A DNA stretch of 57,960 nucleotides, taken from positions 735,889 to 793,848 of the forward strand of contig BFEA01000019.1 of the NCBI GenBank assembly GCA_003427395.1. The letters are read 5' to 3'. Each line of letters begins with the position of its first letter. Position 1 is the stretch's first letter. Positions 1-50,760 of this stretch are shown here, one piece after another. The notes beneath the pieces were generated by a model, which had not been told where the DNA came from, made no database searches, and saw nothing but the letters and a program-made list of their open reading frames with translations. This stretch comes from Chara braunii. Taxonomy: Eukaryota > Plantae > Charophyceae. Position numbers and translations under genes: made by a program.

Positions 1-707
1 GTATGCCATAACAGCCCACTTGCACGCTGTGAGAGAGGCAAAGTGAAGGGGAAGGTGTTAAACACAGGGAAAAGCTCAAGAATGAGGCTGTCCTTGACGA
101 CAGAAAGGACACACATTGTAAGGATGGGGTGGATGTATATCGTCACATGAATATCAGAGCGCAAAAGCGAAAAAAAAAGAAAACGAAAAAAAAGAAAAGA
201 ATGAATTCGGTTTTTATCTTCTTCCTTACAACTCCACCGTCAGAACCTCTTGCGTACAAGGCCGCCCACGTGGATGTAGGTTGAGTGGCGGCTGCCCCCA
301 CCCCCGTGTGTTGACTAAGAGCGCAAGCACGTGAAGTAGAAGAAGAAATAAGATGAGCAAAGGAAGAAAAATGAAAGGACAGACAGGCAAAGAGAAACAA
401 ACTAGAATGACACAAAACAGTGTCCTCTTCTTCTTTGTTACACTGTATTCTTACTTCTTTCAGTGTTTTACAAAATGTTTTTACACTGAACAAAGGACAA
501 AAATAAAAAACAAAGACACATTGACATCATTCAATTTCTCAGTCTTCTTAAGACCTCCACCGTGCCTCTAACGTACAAGGCCCACCACGTTGATGAAGTT
601 GAGCGCGAGCTGCCCCCTATAGTCATAGGGTACAACCCGGTGAACCACAGGCATGAAGGGATTAAAGGATAAGAAACCGGAGGCCGCGACACTGCCGATA
701 ACCGTAC

Positions 708-869
708 CTTGGTGAGCATGACCACAATGAATCCACTTTCTGTGATGTTGTTTTCCACCAATGACGTCTCATCCTTCAGAACCTTCCCCTGATATATCAG
801 CACTTGGTTTTCCATCGGGTACATCTCCTTCCCCTGAGAATCTTGAATTTTCTCCTTCACATTGCGCAC
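708..869 (-). CDS. RAD23: RAD23 coding exon 2 (ubiquitin-like domain); gene continues beyond window start
   Basis: Translates VRNVKEKIQDSQGKEMYPMENQVLIYQGKVLKDETSLVENNITESGFIVVMLTK, a plant RAD23-type UBL. Acceptor ctgtAG and donor AAG|GTACGG; 162 nt, phase 0. Confidence 0.93.
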
Positions 870-8819: not shown

Positions 8820-9470
8820 CATGCTCAATACATGTGTGCGTGTTCATCACCTCTTACGTACAAGGCCAGTCACGTGGATGACATCGTCACATGAATATCA
8901 GAGCGCAAAGGGGAAAAAAACAAAAAACAACAAGAAAAAAATAATTCGTTTTTTTCCTTCCTTACAACTCCCCCTGTTCAGAACCTCCTCTTGCGTACAA
9001 GGCCGCCCACGTGGATGTGGGTTGAGCGGCGGCTGCCCCCACCCCCGTGTGTCATATCGACCCACTTGCACACAGCCAAAGGATATATCCAGCAACAGAA
9101 AGATGTCTCTCCACTCCCAATAATCTAAATGCACATATATATCGTCTATGCATATATATTGTCACAAGAATATCAGAGCGCAAATGCGAAAAAAAGAAAA
9201 AAAGAAAGAAAAACAGTCTATGCATATATGCATATATCATCACATGAATATGAGAGCGCAAAAGCGAAAAAAAAAAAAAAAAGAATAAATACGTTTTTTT
9301 ATATCTTCTTCCTTACAACTCCCCCTGTTCAGAACCTCTTGCGTACAAGGCCGCCCACGTGGATGTATATATATATGCATATAATTGTCACATGAATATC
9401 AGAGCGCAAAGGCGAAAAAAACAGAAGAAAACAACAAAAAATAATTCGTTTTTTTTATATATGCATACAT
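8820..9470. repeat. Clustered copies of a second interspersed family (tatcgtcacatgaatatcagagcgcaaa...cttacaactccccc...gtacaaggccgcccacgtggatg)
   Basis: Repeated at about 138-310, 8880-9070, 9160, 9240-9365, 9385 and 9735-9830; diverged copy at about 21170-21510. Confidence 0.8.
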
Positions 9471-9477
9471 GTATACA

Positions 9478-9725
9478 TATCGTCCTAGAGAACTGCCCGG
9501 TGAACCGTAGGCAGAGAGGGAGAGGAGGACAACGAAACCGAGGGGCTGTGACAGACTTTCGTCGGAGCTTCACCCACTCATCAGGAGGTTGAACCCTCTA
9601 CAGTCTACAGGGGTCCCTTCACCGACGATGATACGGTAATCATAATCCACCATAACCACGGTCGCGGTTGAGCATCAACGACTGCCCCAGAACTGATACC
9701 CCGAAGGGAACAACCACTATACACC
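9478..9725 (-). mobile_element. Dispersed copy of the hammerhead element (2-nt deletion after GAAA)
   Basis: AGACUGUA GAGG..CCUC CUGAUGA GUGGG..CCGAC GAAA GUCU at about 9552-9606; flanked by TA-rich runs. Confidence 0.75.
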
Positions 9726-9967
9726 CATATATATCGTCACATGAAATACATATACATATCGTCACAAATATATCGGAGCGCAAAAGCGAAATATGTATAT
9801 ATATTGTCACACTGTGAATCGGAGCGCAAAGGCGGAAAAAGACTAAACAAAAAAGGGAAAGAAGGAAGAAAAAGCTCCGCCTGTTCATCACCTCTTATAC
9901 ACGAGCATATACATATACACATATATACATATATATACGCGCGTACGCATATGTGCATCTACATATA

Positions 9968-10085
9968 TCTCTTGATGAGTCGTTGAAGCTCCCGATGAAA
10001 CAGTTTGTCACAGCCCCTCGTTTGTTGTCCTCTTCCCCCTCCCTCTCTGCCCCTACGGTTTACCGGACAGTTCTGTCTGACGATA
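9968..10085 (+). mobile_element. Inverted, 5'-truncated copy of the hammerhead element
   Basis: ttgatgagtcg...gaaacagtttgtcacagcccctcg...cctacggtttaccggacagttctgtctgacgatata. Confidence 0.7.
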
Positions 10086-17882: not shown

Positions 17883-19572
17883 AAAAAAAAAAAAGTTGAA
17901 TGGCAAACACGGCATATGGGTCAAACTACGGCCTCGATACATTTTTATTGTTGAAATTATTTTTTTATTTATTTAATATTTTTCCTTGAGAGATCACTAC
18001 AAAAATTGTGAGCACGTCCTTCGGGACATCCGTTAAAATTGAAACGATACATAAAACATTGCATGGCCCTAAGGATGACACGAATAAATTGAGGAAAAAA
18101 AAATGCAAACACTTCAATTTATCATTTTTTCATACATTCTTTTGAGCACAAAAAATCACTGCAGTTGGAGTATTTTTTCCATTGGCCTACATGTGGTCGA
18201 GTGGCAAAAATGGCAAATGTGTCGAATCGACACGTTCATTATTTAACGGTCTTAACGATTTTTTTTAATTGTTTTTAGATTTTTTATTAAACGATCACGA
18301 CCTAGTCTATGGATTCCAAACTTTTCAGTGTTTTTTGCGAAGTCCTTCGAGCAAAAAAATCGTCAAAGTTACCTCGTGCAAATAGCAAGACTGGACCTGT
18401 CGGCACCATCCGCCTTAAATAGTTTGCGCATGAAACTCCCGAACACGCCACCCCTTCTTGCTTTCTTTTTGGGTCCACTTCCACCTGAGGACCAGCCGTT
18501 CCATTTCCAAAAGTCTCGGTTTTACGAGAGGTAGTTCTAGGTCATCCGCAATATCGCCAAGGACGGGTCCCGCAAAAACTTTTGCCCCTAAGAACCCACT
18601 TGCGTCCTGGCCGCCCGCAACCAAAAATGCAACACCTTGACACATATGTTGAAGCCCGCTATATTGCCGCCTTAGGGCTACAAATTGTCTACCCCGTGGG
18701 TGAGGGGAAAACAACTTTACGGTATCTATAGCAATGAGACCAAGCGCCCGTACAAAAGAGAGAGAGGGGGGGGGGGGCGGGAGCACCAGAGAGAGAGAGA
18801 GAAGGAGGGAGGTTGAATGACAAAATTGAAATATGAGTCAAATTGTAGCCGTGATCTATTTCACAGGTAATATTTTTTTATGGTTATTTTTTTAATGGAA
18901 AAAATCACAACAAAATTTACGAGCATCGCAATTTTTATATATATATATTTTTTTTTTTTTTTGCGTGAAAAATCACTGAAGCTGAAGTTTTTTTTTCGTT
19001 GGCCCACACATGGCTGAGTGACAAAAATGGAATATAGGTCTAAAAGACGAAATGATTTTCGAAAAATACTTTGATATTTTTCTTGAAAAAAACACGTTTT
19101 AATCTATGAATTCTTAAATTTTAATTTATAATTTTTTATGCAAATTCCTCCGAACATAAAAAATCACAAAATTTGTCTCTTGCAAAATGTTTGTTTTGTT
19201 ATGCCTTCCCACGCCTTTCCAGCGTTGACCTCCCTGTTCTTAAAAAACGAACCTCAACGTCTAGGTCTGAAGGCCCTTTTGTAGTTCACATGCAAGGAGT
19301 ACTGGTCCTCCAATTTTTTACCGCGCCGGTTCCAGGCGCGATCGTTGTATGTAGTCTGTAAGAATGTGATGGACCGGTTCCCCAACAACTTTCACCCCAT
19401 TAAAACCCACTTATGTGTCGATCCCCCGCCGCTGATAATGTGTCACCTTAACACAAACGCTGAAGCCTAATCTACCACATCCTTAGGGTTGCGAATTACC
19501 AATTGTCTACTGTGTAGGCACAAGGAACACAAACCTAAGGTAGCTAAAGCAATAGGACTAAGCGTTTGCACA

Positions 19573-20369: not shown

Positions 20370-20580
20370 GTATTCCTGTGTATATATACGTTGTTATGTT
20401 TGATATGTACGACTCCACGAAAAAAATAATAATTGTTCAAGAATGTTTCGTTTTTCTTTCATCGACTCATTAGGAGGTTAAACCCCAACGCTCTACCTAT
20501 GATGCATTTGACTAATGGATAAAGACTCACCACATCGCCCAGAGTTAGCTATACCCCTAAGAAACTGGTTGACTTCACTT
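20370..20580 (-). mobile_element. Hammerhead element subfamily 2, older decayed copy
   Basis: gactcattaggaggttaaacccc...catttgact...caccacatcgcccagagttag aligns to the 26.4-kb copy. Confidence 0.55.
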
Positions 20581-26394: not shown

Positions 26395-26600
26395 CTGGTC
26401 TCCTGTGAGTGTGTATGTTGTCATATTCGCTATACACTCAAAAAAAGCACGACTGTGCCAGATTGGTTCGTCGGACTTTCAATGACTCATCAGGAGGTTG
26501 AACCCCGACAGTCTGCCCAGGATTCATTTGACTGAAGGTTAAGAATGCACCACATCGTCCAGAGTTAGAGATAGCCCTGAGAATAGTGGTAGACTTTACT
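26395..26600 (-). mobile_element. Hammerhead element subfamily 2 (degenerate core)
   Basis: CAGACUGUC GGGG..CCUC CUGAUGA GUC...GAC GAAC at about 26459-26515. Flanks are shared with the 20.4-kb copy; adjacent to (TG)n. Confidence 0.65.
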
Positions 26601-36080: not shown

Positions 36081-36944
36081 TGTTGCGTACAACGAAGTTC
36101 TCCAAAGGTAGTTCGTAATAATTTTCAGGGCTAAACAAAGAAATGTATTCACTGTTTTTGGAAAATTTATAGATACTCATTTTTTTAGTAATTTGGGTTT
36201 CTTTCAATATTGTCATGCAGGCGCGACGCTCCAAAAGGACAATGCAGCCAATACACCTACCACGAGCAAGAGAACAAATGGAGACGAAACGCACGACAAC
36301 TCGCCACCGTCCGCAAACATTGCTGATCAAACGCCAAACAAACTGCCATTTACTACTGCTCCTACTGCAAACCTTGCAGATACTGAAACATGTCAACCAC
36401 TTCCTCCTTCCACAAACATAAACGCCTCTAATACTGCTCCTACTGAAAACCTTGCAGATGCTGCAACCTGTGAAGAACTTCCTCCTTCCACAAACATTAA
36501 CGCCTCGCAAAATAGTGTCGCCGCGCTTACCTAACTCACACCGTTGACAATTGTCAATCTAGATGATGATACCGCTTTGGATGATGCTCTGTGTAGTGCG
36601 GATATTCACGGTCTAAAATATGCACGAGCGAAAGTTGGCCCTTCACCATTCTCCCAGACCATGCTTACTTCTCCATCATTTTTACCTTCTACACAACATC
36701 GAGTTTGCCCACGCACACTGCAATTTCTCACTCCGCAGTCTACCACTTCACCGTCTTCACCGACCCAATCCCCGAGTTGGCATCACATGGTGAAGATCAC
36801 CGGTTTGCCAAACCTTATTGAATGCCTGCTTTGGGAAAATTTCTTTCCGACTACTTTGCATGTTCTTATATATCGTTACAAACAGAACTGCCCGGTAAAC
36901 CGTAGGCAGAGAGAGAGAAAAGGACAACAAACGAGGGGCTGTGA

Positions 36945-37002
36945 CAAACAGTTTCGTCGGAGTTTTACCAACTCATCAGGAGGCTGAACCCTCAACAGTC
37001 TG
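36945..37002 (-). ncRNA. Type III hammerhead ribozyme, intact core
   Basis: CAGACU-GUU^-GAGG guucag CCUC-CUGAUGA-GUUGG uaaaacu CCGAC-GAAA-CUGUUUG; one U-U mismatch in stem III. Confidence 0.8.
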
Positions 37003-38294
37003 CAGAATCCCCTCACTGATTACACTATAAATGATAATCTACCTTAACCAAAATCAAAGTAGACTATCACTCACCCACACCAGATGGAAAACTCTACAGA
37101 CTGTCGGTTCACACCCCATCACAAGCCAGCAAAACATCCACNNNNNNNNNNNNNNNNNNNNNNNNNNNNNNNNNNNNNNNNNNNNNNNNNNNNNNNNNNN
37201 NNNNNNNNNNNNNNNNNNNNNNNNNNNNNNNNNNNNNNNNNNNNNNNNNNNNNNNNNNNNNNNNNNNNNNNNNNNNNNNNNNNNNNNNNNNNNNNNNNNN
37301 NNNNNNNNNNNNNNNNNNNNNNNNNNNNNNNNNNNNNNNNNNNNNNNNNNNNNNNNNNNNNNNNNNNNNNNNNNNNNNNNNNNNNNNNNNNNNNNNNNNN
37401 NNNNNNNNNNNNNNNNNNNNNNNNNNNNNNNNNNNNNNNNNNNNNNNNNNNNNNNNNNNNNNNNNNNNNNNNNNNNNNNNNNNNNNNNNNNNNNNNNNNN
37501 NNNNNNNNNNNNNNNNNNNNNNNNNNNNNNNNNNNNNNNNNNNNNNNNNNNNNNNNNNNNNNNNNNNNNNNNNNNNNNNNNNNNNNNNNNNNNNNNNNNN
37601 NNNNNNNNNNNNNNNNNNNNNNNNNNNNNNNNNNNNNNNNNNNNNNNNNNNNNNNNNNNNNNNNNNNNNNNNNNNNNNNNNNNNNNNNNNNNNNNNNNNN
37701 NNNNNNNNNNNNNNNNNNNNNNNNNNNNNNNNNNNNNNNNNNNNNNNNNNNNNNNNNNNNNNNNNNNNNNNNNNNNNNNNNNNNNNNNNNNNNNNNNNNN
37801 NNNNNNNNNNNNNNNNNNNNNNNNNNNNNNNNNNNNNNNNNNNNNNNNNNNNNNNNNNNNNNNNNNNNNNNNNNNNNNNNNNNNNNNNNNNNNNNNNNNN
37901 NNNNNNNNNNNNNNNNNNNNNNNNNNNNNNNNNNNNNNNNNNNNNNNNNNNNNNNNNNNNNNNNNNNNNNNACCAAAATCAAAGTAGACTATCACTCACC
38001 CACACCAGATGGAAAACTCTACAGACTGTCGGTTCACACCCCATCACAAGCCAGCAAAACATCCACTAAACAAAGAAAGGTCTGTCACAGCCAAAANATA
38101 CACTCCAGACAAGCCGCTGGGACTAGAGGCACAGCATGGCCGCCTAGTAACGGCCCCGACCACTGCCGCTCAACCTGACCGAAAAAAACCGTAGCAGGCA
38201 GATTGCGAAGTCGTAGTATATATCGTCACAAACAAAACTGCCCTGTAAACCGTAGGCAGAGAGAGAGAGGAGGACAACAAACGAGGGGCTGTGA

Positions 38295-38351
38295 CAGACT
38301 GTTTCGTCAGAGTTTCACCGACTCATCAGGAGGCTGAACCCTCAACAATCT
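38295..38351 (-). ncRNA. Type III hammerhead ribozyme, intact core
   Basis: AGAUU-GUU^-GAGG guucag CCUC-CUGAUGA-GUCGG ugaaacu CUGAC-GAAA-CAGUCU; all three stems pair. Confidence 0.85.
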
Positions 38352-39871
38352 ACAGAATCCCCTCACTGATTACACTGTAAATGATAATCTACCTTAACCA
38401 AAATCAAAACAGACTATCACTCATATATCGTTACAAAATATGTATATATATATGCCTACGGTTTATCGGGTAGTTCTATGTGACGATATATATATATAAG
38501 ATTCTTGCGATATAAGCAGGACAAGATTCACTCACACATCCCTAAAAGGAACGTCGCCTATGATTTCCAAAATTGCAAATAAAATATGAGTGTGTTGAGT
38601 AATCCATTGAATTACGATTACAAACGGTCGGGCAAAACTGCTAGCTTCATCGATTACCGCTATAACCGAGTCATGCATGTGTACCTCGCGACTATTGTTG
38701 CCAAACCGAAAATGCCTACCACACCTCTTTGTATACCGAATCAATGGTGGGATCCATTGCAATCCTTCAAATACCGAGACGTCACTTGCAAAATCCTTCG
38801 AATGAATGACGCTGATAGGCAATTCGAAATTGACAGGGATACTGTCAACTCATGCCGACCCAACTTTTGGGAGTACATTAAGAAGGTCTTGGGCATTGCG
38901 TTCCTGCGACAACTGGACAAACACCGTCTTACATTCCTCCATTATCGGGATAATATTGTTCGCAGAATTGCATGTGTCCTTGCGTCAAAGAAGGAATACC
39001 TTATCCTCGTCAAAGGACCGTTGCGATCTGCAGGTTATTGCCACAATTTCCAAGATGAACCAGGTGAAACCCCAACCGCCGCGCACCGCCCCTCCAATTC
39101 TACACATGCATGCTGAAATGGCAATCTCCCTATGGAGAACGCTATCAAGATTTCATTTGTCGGGGAAGCTAAGGGCGTTTATATTGCCGACTTGCCGATG
39201 GAATAGAAACCGGAGGAACCGGGTTCCCATTCCACATAATGGATACAGACCAAATAGCCGTGCAATCCTTTTTTTTTGCCTTTGTAATACAGAAAATCAG
39301 TGTATCACGAATTGTCCACTATGGGTTGCCTTCTTTCAACCCTTTTTTTCTTTTTGTGAAAGAAGCACGAAATGAGAGCATGTTTCATTTCAATTTTCAT
39401 TCTTTTGCCAATTTTCATTTTCTATTTTTGCGGGTGAAGCAGCAATGGGTCATCGAGTATAGATAATAAGCAATATAATAGAAAGTGCGAGCTTCGGCCC
39501 ACAGAACCAAAATCTCATTTACCAAAAACAAACAAATATAACAGAATTGGCATTCCCGACATTCATCTCAAACTACACACTCGCATCACTGCCAAAGAAG
39601 AGGAGGCGAGTGCCAGCTGCCCACACCCCCGTGTGCCTTAACGTCACACTTGCACGTTATGAAAGGAGGCAGAGGAAAGGGGGAGGCATACTCCTGTTCA
39701 TTTTTCTTCAGGTCTTCAACTTATATTTTTTCTGTTCTCTTAATGATGCTCATTCGTATGTATTTAATAGTAATACACAAGGGGAGCGAGGAATGAAGGG
39801 GAAGCAATGAAAGGGGCGGAGGTGTTTTACAAGAGGCGATGCATGTGTGTGTGTGTGTGTGTGTGTGTGTG

Positions 39872-50577: not shown

Positions 50578-50760
50578 TATTGTTGCAGACAACTGCCCCG
50601 TGAGCTGTCGACAGAAAGGGAGAAAAGGACAAGAAGTAGGGTGCTGTGCCAGACTGTTTGTCGGACTTTCACCAACTTACCAGGACGCTGAAACCTCAAT
50701 AGTCTGCACAGTCCCCTAACAGGTGGAAGATAGTATATGAGTTAATTCACCTTAACCCCA
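50578..50760 (-). mobile_element. Decayed hammerhead element copy in a HOS1 intron
   Basis: aactgccccgtgagc...gctgtgccagactgtttgtcggactttcacc...gaaacctcaatagtctgca; core mutated. Confidence 0.6.

Follow-up and report, generated by a model that had tools for sequence, protein, structure and literature searches.

A very abundant non-coding repeat with type III hammerhead motifs in Chara braunii, probably a Penelope-style retroelement

Contig BFEA01000019.1 of the Chara braunii assembly GCA_003427395.1 carries, within the 57,960-nt stretch from 735,889 to 793,848 that we analysed (the window; all positions below are counted from its first letter), two type III hammerhead ribozyme motifs on the minus strand. 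Each lies in one copy of a 205-nt repeat, R, and between the two repeats are a non-coding spacer of 220 nt, I, and an assembly gap. Together I and R form a unit of 425 nt, in which position 37972 matches 38397, so that the head-to-tail unit of about 425 bp bounded by two hammerheads, proposed in a first-pass annotation of this DNA, is upheld. We interpret the locus, on balance, as one insertion of a hugely abundant non-coding retroelement of Penelope style. Read along the minus, hammerhead strand, it is composed as follows.

38454-38491, plus strand: inverted, 5′-truncated copy holding the final 38 nt of the element (blastn against R; error-free DNA contig 38380-38517)
38438-38453, no strand: TA-rich spacer left over from the (TA)n target (sequence reading)
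38423-38437, minus strand: 15-nt direct copy of the 3′ terminus (TTTGTAACGATATAT), the shortest of the stack (sequence reading)
38218-38422, minus strand: upstream R, 205 nt, a 5′-truncated copy of the unit ending in ...CGATATAT (92.6% identity to 36871-37073)
38296-38351, minus strand: hammerhead A, type III, intact (Rfam RF00008; read contigs that run out into (TA)n behind 38342 and 38343)
37998-38217, minus strand: spacer I, 220 nt, non-coding (no primer-binding site (PBS), no open reading frame (ORF); read depth like that of R)
38031-38092, minus strand: part of I complementary to the hammerhead domain, a putative antisense relic (alignment and helices of the minimum free energy (MFE) fold)
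37972-37997, minus strand: initial 26 nt of the next R, interrupted by the gap (in register with 38397-38422)
37142-37971, no strand: assembly gap (identical 95 nt on both sides; no contig across)
37073-37141, minus strand: final 69 nt of I; this and 37998-38066 may be one piece of DNA (100% identity)
36868-37072, minus strand: downstream R, 205 nt (error-free contig 36500-36896; (TA)n loose ends before 36867 and 36879)
36946-37001, minus strand: hammerhead B, type III, with one mismatch in stem III (Rfam RF00008; joint at 36992 with ATA between the sides)

The I+R unit is thus preceded head-to-tail by a 5′-truncated R, then by the 15-nt copy and finally by the inverted 38-nt copy, whose ...CGATATAT end points outward into (TA)n. 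R starts with TG and ends with TA, its 5′ border being the truncation point of the upstream copy. The 3′ end of the element, ...CGAUAUAU, lies within a (TA)n tract, about 125 nt beyond the hammerhead in the element RNA, and in the downstream R this terminus meets low-copy flanking sequence via TATATA. Both outer junctions of the insertion are covered by the error-free DNA contigs given above.

The inverted 38-nt piece prompted us to consider a DNA transposon, or miniature inverted-repeat transposable element, with terminal inverted repeats. This candidate was rejected because the piece is a truncated copy of the 3′ end and the other copies are 5′-truncated and stacked head-to-tail.

Hammerhead motifs and coding capacity

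Both motifs match the Rfam model Hammerhead_3 (RF00008) on the minus strand, below its gathering score: hammerhead A at 38296-38351 with 39.9 bits (E 1.1e-6 in a 1.9-kb search and 3.3e-5 over the whole window) and hammerhead B at 36946-37001 with 33.5 bits (E 6.9e-5 locally and 2.1e-3 over the whole window). In each, the core CUGAUGA and GAAAC and the cleavage triplet GUU^G are accompanied by a stem I of 4 bp with a 6-nt loop, a stem II of 5 bp with a 7-nt loop and a stem III of 7 bp that is open, giving the type III topology. Cleavage is predicted between 38344 and 38343 in A and between 36994 and 36993 in B. Stem II differs between A and B at two places, C-G to U-G and G-U to G-C, both of which preserve pairing. 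The first-pass annotation had described two minus-strand type III hammerheads with this core, cleavage site, hairpin stem I, 5-bp stem II, open stem III and wobble swaps in stem II, and all of these are borne out.

In B, stem III carries one U-U mismatch, at its third pair, which the family-majority letter at 36950 re-pairs. With the majority letters of the family, taken from read contigs (T at 36950, C at 36966, A at 38297 and G at 38309), the ribozyme is paired throughout its stems, and the hammerhead three-way junction is its fold of lowest energy. Every core nucleotide and all three helices are retained in A and in this family-majority sequence. Together with a whole-window E-value of 3e-5 and with genomic 5′ ends that in some cases fall within 1 nt of the predicted cleavage site (see below), this makes it very improbable that we are looking at chance or dead motifs that never cleave, even though the scores lie under the gathering score, covariation is lacking in the window, A and B folded in isolation favour an alternative fold by 3-4 kcal/mol, and most other copies in the window (9557-9584, 9969-10085, 20440-20494, 26460-26514 and about 50640-50700) carry damage to the core or a stem. 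Judged from their sequences, both minus-strand type III hammerheads are real as motifs, and self-cleavage is predicted. A metagenome scan with the hammerhead consensus gave zero matches.

The unit itself is non-coding, the longest stop-free stretch in a unit dimer being 71 codons, in agreement with the absence of an ORF reported by the first-pass annotation. Having no ORF for a Penelope-type reverse transcriptase (RT) and GIY-YIG endonuclease, the element would be a non-autonomous dependant at most.

Direct repeats with type III hammerheads around a non-coding centre, in a plant-lineage genome, also recall an ordinary plant retrozyme with two long terminal repeats (LTRs), mobilised by Ty3/gypsy elements. 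Plant LTR retrozymes have LTRs of 300-400 bp, a PBS, a polypurine tract (PPT) and 4-bp duplications (Cervera et al. 2016, PMC4918200). Here, however, the repeats measure 205 bp rather than 300-400 bp (PMC4918200), no match to a tRNA-Met PBS was found within 3 mismatches on either strand of the dimer, and R ends in TA with TA repeats as flanks and no 4-bp target-site duplication (TSD). Furthermore, the upstream R has the additional 15-nt piece of R terminus in front of it, and copies are 5′-truncated and stacked in (TA)n. We rejected the LTR retrozyme for want of both PBS and 4-bp TSD, and give it next to no chance; the non-LTR character claimed at first pass therefore stands, with an R that begins TG but ends TA.

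Assembly gap, family copies and target

How many units the locus holds depends on the gap at 37142-37971. Contigs from two DNA runs break within the repeat, and none spans it. The gap borders, 37047-37141 and 37972-38066, are 100% identical over 95 nt, whereas the two R copies are only 92.6% identical; between separate units of equal age, 95 identical nucleotides would be expected with a chance of about 0.926^95 = 7e-4. The possible true lengths of the gap are k x 425 - 95, with k = 0 meaning that the contig ends overlap. Because the borders are identical while the R copies differ by 7.4%, the gap is possibly an unmerged contig overlap, and from the sequences we consider such an overlap, or borders that a gap closer assembled from reads of the family, more likely than concealed additional units.

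A true, satellite-like array of at least three units could nonetheless be envisaged inside the gap, arising when a circular 425-nt RNA is reverse-transcribed in rolling-circle fashion, a process proposed for animal non-LTR retrozymes. The estimated gap of 830 is near 2 x 425 - 95 = 755, the R-to-I junction is seamless, and the unit RNA folds into a branched rod (see below), as such an origin would have it. Set against the identity of the 95-nt borders in the face of 7.4% R divergence, with its chance of about 7e-4, and against read contigs that do not span the gap, we find a hidden array decidedly unlikely. The certain content of the locus is R-I-R only, about 620 bp or ~1.46 units, and further units are unproven. 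Of the tandem monomers of the first-pass annotation, R-I-R thus survives as a minimum, while an array is undemonstrated and the gap is possibly spurious.

Two side observations concern the assembly. Among the differences listed, the 95-nt gap borders show no majority difference from the family, compared with about 1 per 15 nt in the rest of I, a weak observation by which the gap edges may have been assembled from family reads, not from this locus. The 58 kb of the window contain fifteen runs of N, from 4 to 830 letters long and in several cases adjoining repeats; elements of this kind break up the short-read assembly.

The element belongs to a very large, hugely abundant family. Summed word depth, which is a crude measure of abundance, amounts to 2e5 to 2.7e6 across the element versus 14-67 in the flanks; read depth over the element is 10^4 to 10^5 times that of the flanks. 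Depth peaks over the 3′ part, at 2.3 million for 36885-36961, with I at 0.7-0.9 million.

The ends of other copies appear as loose ends and joints of read contigs, and those cited here are the best-supported of much longer lists and provide no count of copies. First, the loose ends before 36867 and 36879 are (TA)n, and hence the 3′ terminus lies regularly within a TA repeat. Second, among the joints listed, positions 36912, 36924, 36992, 37102, 38007, 38294 and 38328 are connected to 38216/38217 with TA or ATA between; these joints at variable positions are head-to-tail stacks of 5′-truncated copies across the genome. Third, the loose ends behind 38342 (33 contigs in run X1) and 38343 (run X5) and the joint at 36992 form a set of genomic 5′ ends no more than 1 nt from the predicted cleavage sites (38344/38343 and 36994/36993).

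The family also has a long form, with added sequence between 38399 and 38400 (equivalent to 37049 and 37050), as in the window copy at 9650-9730. That copy belongs to a pair of family members which occupy, in opposite orientations, a stretch rich in TA and (CT)n: the one at 9478-9730 (minus strand) is of this long form, and the one at 9969-10085 (plus strand) is 5′-truncated inside the hammerhead, about 10 nt past the cleavage site.

Structure and transcripts of the unit RNA

For folding, the 425-nt unit was taken between successive cleavage sites, joining 38343-37972 to 37046-36994, and the single N at 38097 was given a placeholder letter; all four letters led to the same folding result. The sense unit has an MFE of -177.3 kcal/mol, compared with -132.7 ± 5.0 in dinucleotide shuffles (z -9.0), and the antisense unit reaches -107.9 (z -2.7). 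A unit taken from the right contig only folds alike, at -166 (sense) versus -98, with z -5.5. In these models, strong structure of the unit is confined to the hammerhead strand, whatever the share of base composition in it.

The predicted fold is rod-like and branched. The hammerhead domain is matched to the segment at 38031-38092 by 42 Watson-Crick and 8 G-U pairs over 58 aligned positions, and the same pairing recurs in the MFE helices, so that in the folded unit RNA this putative antisense relic would sequester the ribozyme. In the MFE structure, the 3′ end of I is base-paired with the stretch that immediately precedes the cleavage site, and the start of R forms a 22-bp hairpin. Across the three long arms, the transition-type departures from complementarity comprise 23 G-U and 0 A-C, a ratio with a chance of 2^-23 under neutral symmetric decay of an inverted duplication.

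In an oligo-dT library, first mates on the plus strand are 5-12 times commoner than on the minus strand (1806 versus 325 at 36885-36961; 208 versus 29 and 108 versus 9 over I), a bias that corresponds to RNA of the hammerhead strand if the library is of the usual stranded kind. The only RNA start listed, at 38225, is the point at which reads leave a variable TA run. At a tandem locus such as this one, reads over a circle junction are identical to the DNA.

A Penelope-style element and its relatives

The first-pass annotation did not recognise the combination of features at this locus, but the hallmarks of Penelope-like elements are present, and hammerhead-bearing Chlamys elements, one of the Penelope-like groups, have been described in green algae including C. 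braunii (Craig et al. 2021, PMC8557442). In Penelope-like elements, 5′ truncation is frequent, tails measure 30-40 bp and insertion favours microsatellites; copies form partial tandems (pseudo-LTRs), with an inverted, 5′-truncated copy at the upstream end (PMC8557442). Their targets are (CA)n and (C)n for Chlamys and (TA)n for Naiads, and non-autonomous Chlamys elements occur as head-to-tail copies in Chlamydomonas (PMC8557442). In C. braunii, Chlamys-2_cBra carries a ‘canonical 3′ HHR’ (hammerhead ribozyme; PMC8557442, 2021), and a third, endonuclease-lacking type also has canonical hammerheads (PMC8557442). The Chara element resembles Chlamys in its partial tandem, the inverted 5′-truncated copy at the 5′ side, 5′ truncation, the microsatellite target and a hammerhead near the 3′ end. 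It differs in having no RT or endonuclease ORF, with none anywhere in the window, and in its (TA)n target. The main text describing Chlamys leaves the hammerhead type unstated (PMC8557442), and the likeness described here is one of layout.

On this evidence we think it reasonably probable that the locus represents a single insertion of a Penelope-style, non-LTR and non-coding retroelement, very abundant in this genome, whose 425-nt unit carries a type III hammerhead. By analogy, it is probably mobilised by the hammerhead-bearing Chlamys Penelope-like elements of Chara. Insertion would proceed by target-primed reverse transcription, primed where the AUAUAU of the RNA anneals to a nicked (TA)n tract, with the enzyme supplied by an autonomous element, most likely such a Chlamys element. 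The hammerhead would cut read-through or tandem transcripts. Cut templates would yield the numerous copies of about 125 nt that start at the cleavage site, and uncut, multimeric or re-ligated (circular) templates would yield copies longer than one unit, such as R-I-R.

Much of this layout would look the same if I-R were the non-coding 3′ tail, or pseudo-LTR, of an autonomous hammerhead-bearing Chlamys element, the locus being a pile of 5′-truncated dead tails that lead no independent existence as RNA. The Penelope-type layout and stacks suit such an origin, as does the 3′ hammerhead of Chlamys-2_cBra. At the locus, however, I begins directly after the 3′ terminus of R, and elsewhere the R-I junction is bridged by at least one contig of high depth (positions 38199-38204, which lie 31-36 nt inside that contig). 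The strong loose ends listed include none at the 5′ end of I, and depth over I nearly equals that over R. The long helices of the unit, strand-specific, self-closing and preserved through wobble pairs, would also be unexpected in a random piece of untranslated region. We therefore hold a pile of dead tails to be unlikely.

Several observations weigh against the Penelope-style retroelement that we favour. First, the hammerhead here is type III, and those of Penelope-like elements are usually of minimal type I (PMC7761336). Second, neither A (39.9 bits) nor B (33.5 bits) reaches the Rfam gathering score of 48.5, and the pairing among six aligned window hammerheads, too few and decayed for a covariation test, is no better than in shuffles (86.8% versus 85.9%), so that support for the hammerheads comes from the motif match and not from covariation. 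Third, none of the 30 ORFs in the window has a Pfam match to an RT or endonuclease family, and no autonomous partner is linked to the element. Fourth, the excess of G-U pairs may partly reflect a sense strand rich in G and U. Fifth, 63% of RNA reads continue into unlike sequence, from which it follows that most are fragments embedded in other transcripts, and no RNA end among those listed lies at the cleavage site, a result on which an oligo-dT library is uninformative either way. Finally, the clustering of genomic 5′ ends at the cleavage site is only suggestive, because the rows considered are the best-supported part of longer lists and not a census.

A more specific possibility is that the element is a green-lineage retrozyme without LTRs, in which hammerhead-cut RNA is ligated into a rod-like circle and a Chlamys RT copies the circle into (TA)n; we put this forward tentatively. 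The closest counterparts would be the animal non-LTR retrozymes, in which units of 170-400 nt with type I hammerheads follow one another head to tail and give rise to self-paired circular RNAs (PMC7229834). Such retrozymes are considered to descend from Penelope elements (Cervera and de la Pena 2020, PMC7229834), with Penelope pseudo-LTRs as the proposed source (Li et al. 2026 preprint 10.64898/2026.07.22.740005). Like them, the Chara element has non-coding head-to-tail units of a few hundred nucleotides, each with a hammerhead and without LTR, PBS or PPT, as well as a highly self-paired monomer RNA, a very high copy number and a presumed dependence on Penelope elements. Its 425-nt unit, present at least 1.46 times and lacking ORF and PBS, falls within the ~150-450 nt of head-to-tail non-LTR retrozymes. 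It differs in its type III rather than type I hammerhead, in its host, a streptophyte alga, and in the ~1.5 units that are certain.

With plant LTR retrozymes the element shares type III hammerheads in direct repeats that flank a non-coding centre, and structured RNA between the cleavage sites. In contrast to them, its repeats are 205 bp and not 300-400 bp, and its unit is 425 nt and not 600-1000 nt. It has no tRNA-Met PBS, 4-bp TSD or gypsy-like LTR ends, and its insertion pattern appears target-primed, with 5′ truncation and (TA)n. By analogy, then, its working mode is like that of an animal non-LTR retrozyme, yet the type I hammerhead of that class is absent, and the PBS, 4-bp TSD and gypsy-like LTR ends of plant LTR retrozymes are missing outright.

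The third comparison is with hammerhead viroids and viroid-like satellite RNAs, which likewise combine type III hammerheads with a compact, self-paired RNA and a ribozyme sequestered by a complementary segment. The sequestering segment of the Chara unit resembles a relic of a hammerhead of opposite polarity. Unlike viroids, the Chara element is nuclear DNA of enormous copy number with one active polarity, and there is no evidence of RNA-to-RNA replication.

Other repeats in the window include a second hammerhead-bearing family of about 200 nt (20374-20579, 26401-26600 and 904-1047; copies 73% identical), with a T run shortly beyond the ribozyme. Its hammerheads at 20440-20494 and 26460-26514 are damaged, one having a CUAAUGA core and the other GAAC for GAAA. 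Another short repeat (...GCGCTCYGATAT...TGTGACRATAT) lies within TA repeats at 9360-9420 and 9727-9840 and has the same TGTGACGATAT-type terminus as the hammerhead element. RNA reads join it to the inverted fragment of the locus (loose end before 38478; consensus agreement 0.99), and it probably represents a second family that is inserted by the same machinery.

Apart from these repeats, the window holds an intact U6 small nuclear RNA gene at 48751-48851 (minus strand, 100.6 bits), which we take to be of plant type. Weaker U6-like copies, from 43.7 down to 19 bits, lie at 18016-18108 (plus), 42880-42985 (minus), 43320-43387 (plus) and 43700-43796 (plus), and U6-derived sequence seems to be dispersed as a repeat in the window. 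The sole Pfam match among the 30 ORFs is an unrelated ubiquitin-family domain (PF00240, E 5e-12) in the ORF at 534-869 (minus).

In algae, a review mentions only ‘putative retrozyme sequences’ (PMC11722881), and in the literature we searched, no retrozyme-like element that is both type III and non-LTR is described from Chara or any other streptophyte alga. Hammerhead-bearing Penelope-like elements in Chara were already known; a type III hammerhead in a non-LTR, plant-lineage setting was not found in that literature. What is new here is the layout of the locus, the analysis of its gap, the 5′ ends clustering near the cleavage site and the wobble-biased structure of the sense strand. For annotation, the element accounts for many ‘retrozyme-like’ matches and for some assembly gaps in the Chara genome.

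Type III hammerheads are found in plant retrozymes and hammerhead viroids and type I in animal retrozymes and Penelope-like elements, and the origin of the plant-type hammerhead is unsettled. The Chara element offers a system for asking whether plant retrozymes descend from Penelope-associated elements, and also whether retrotransposed copies owe their 5′ ends to hammerhead cleavage. If it proves to be a circle-forming retrozyme without LTRs, Chara would link Penelope-associated hammerheads with those of type III found in plant LTR retrozymes and viroids.

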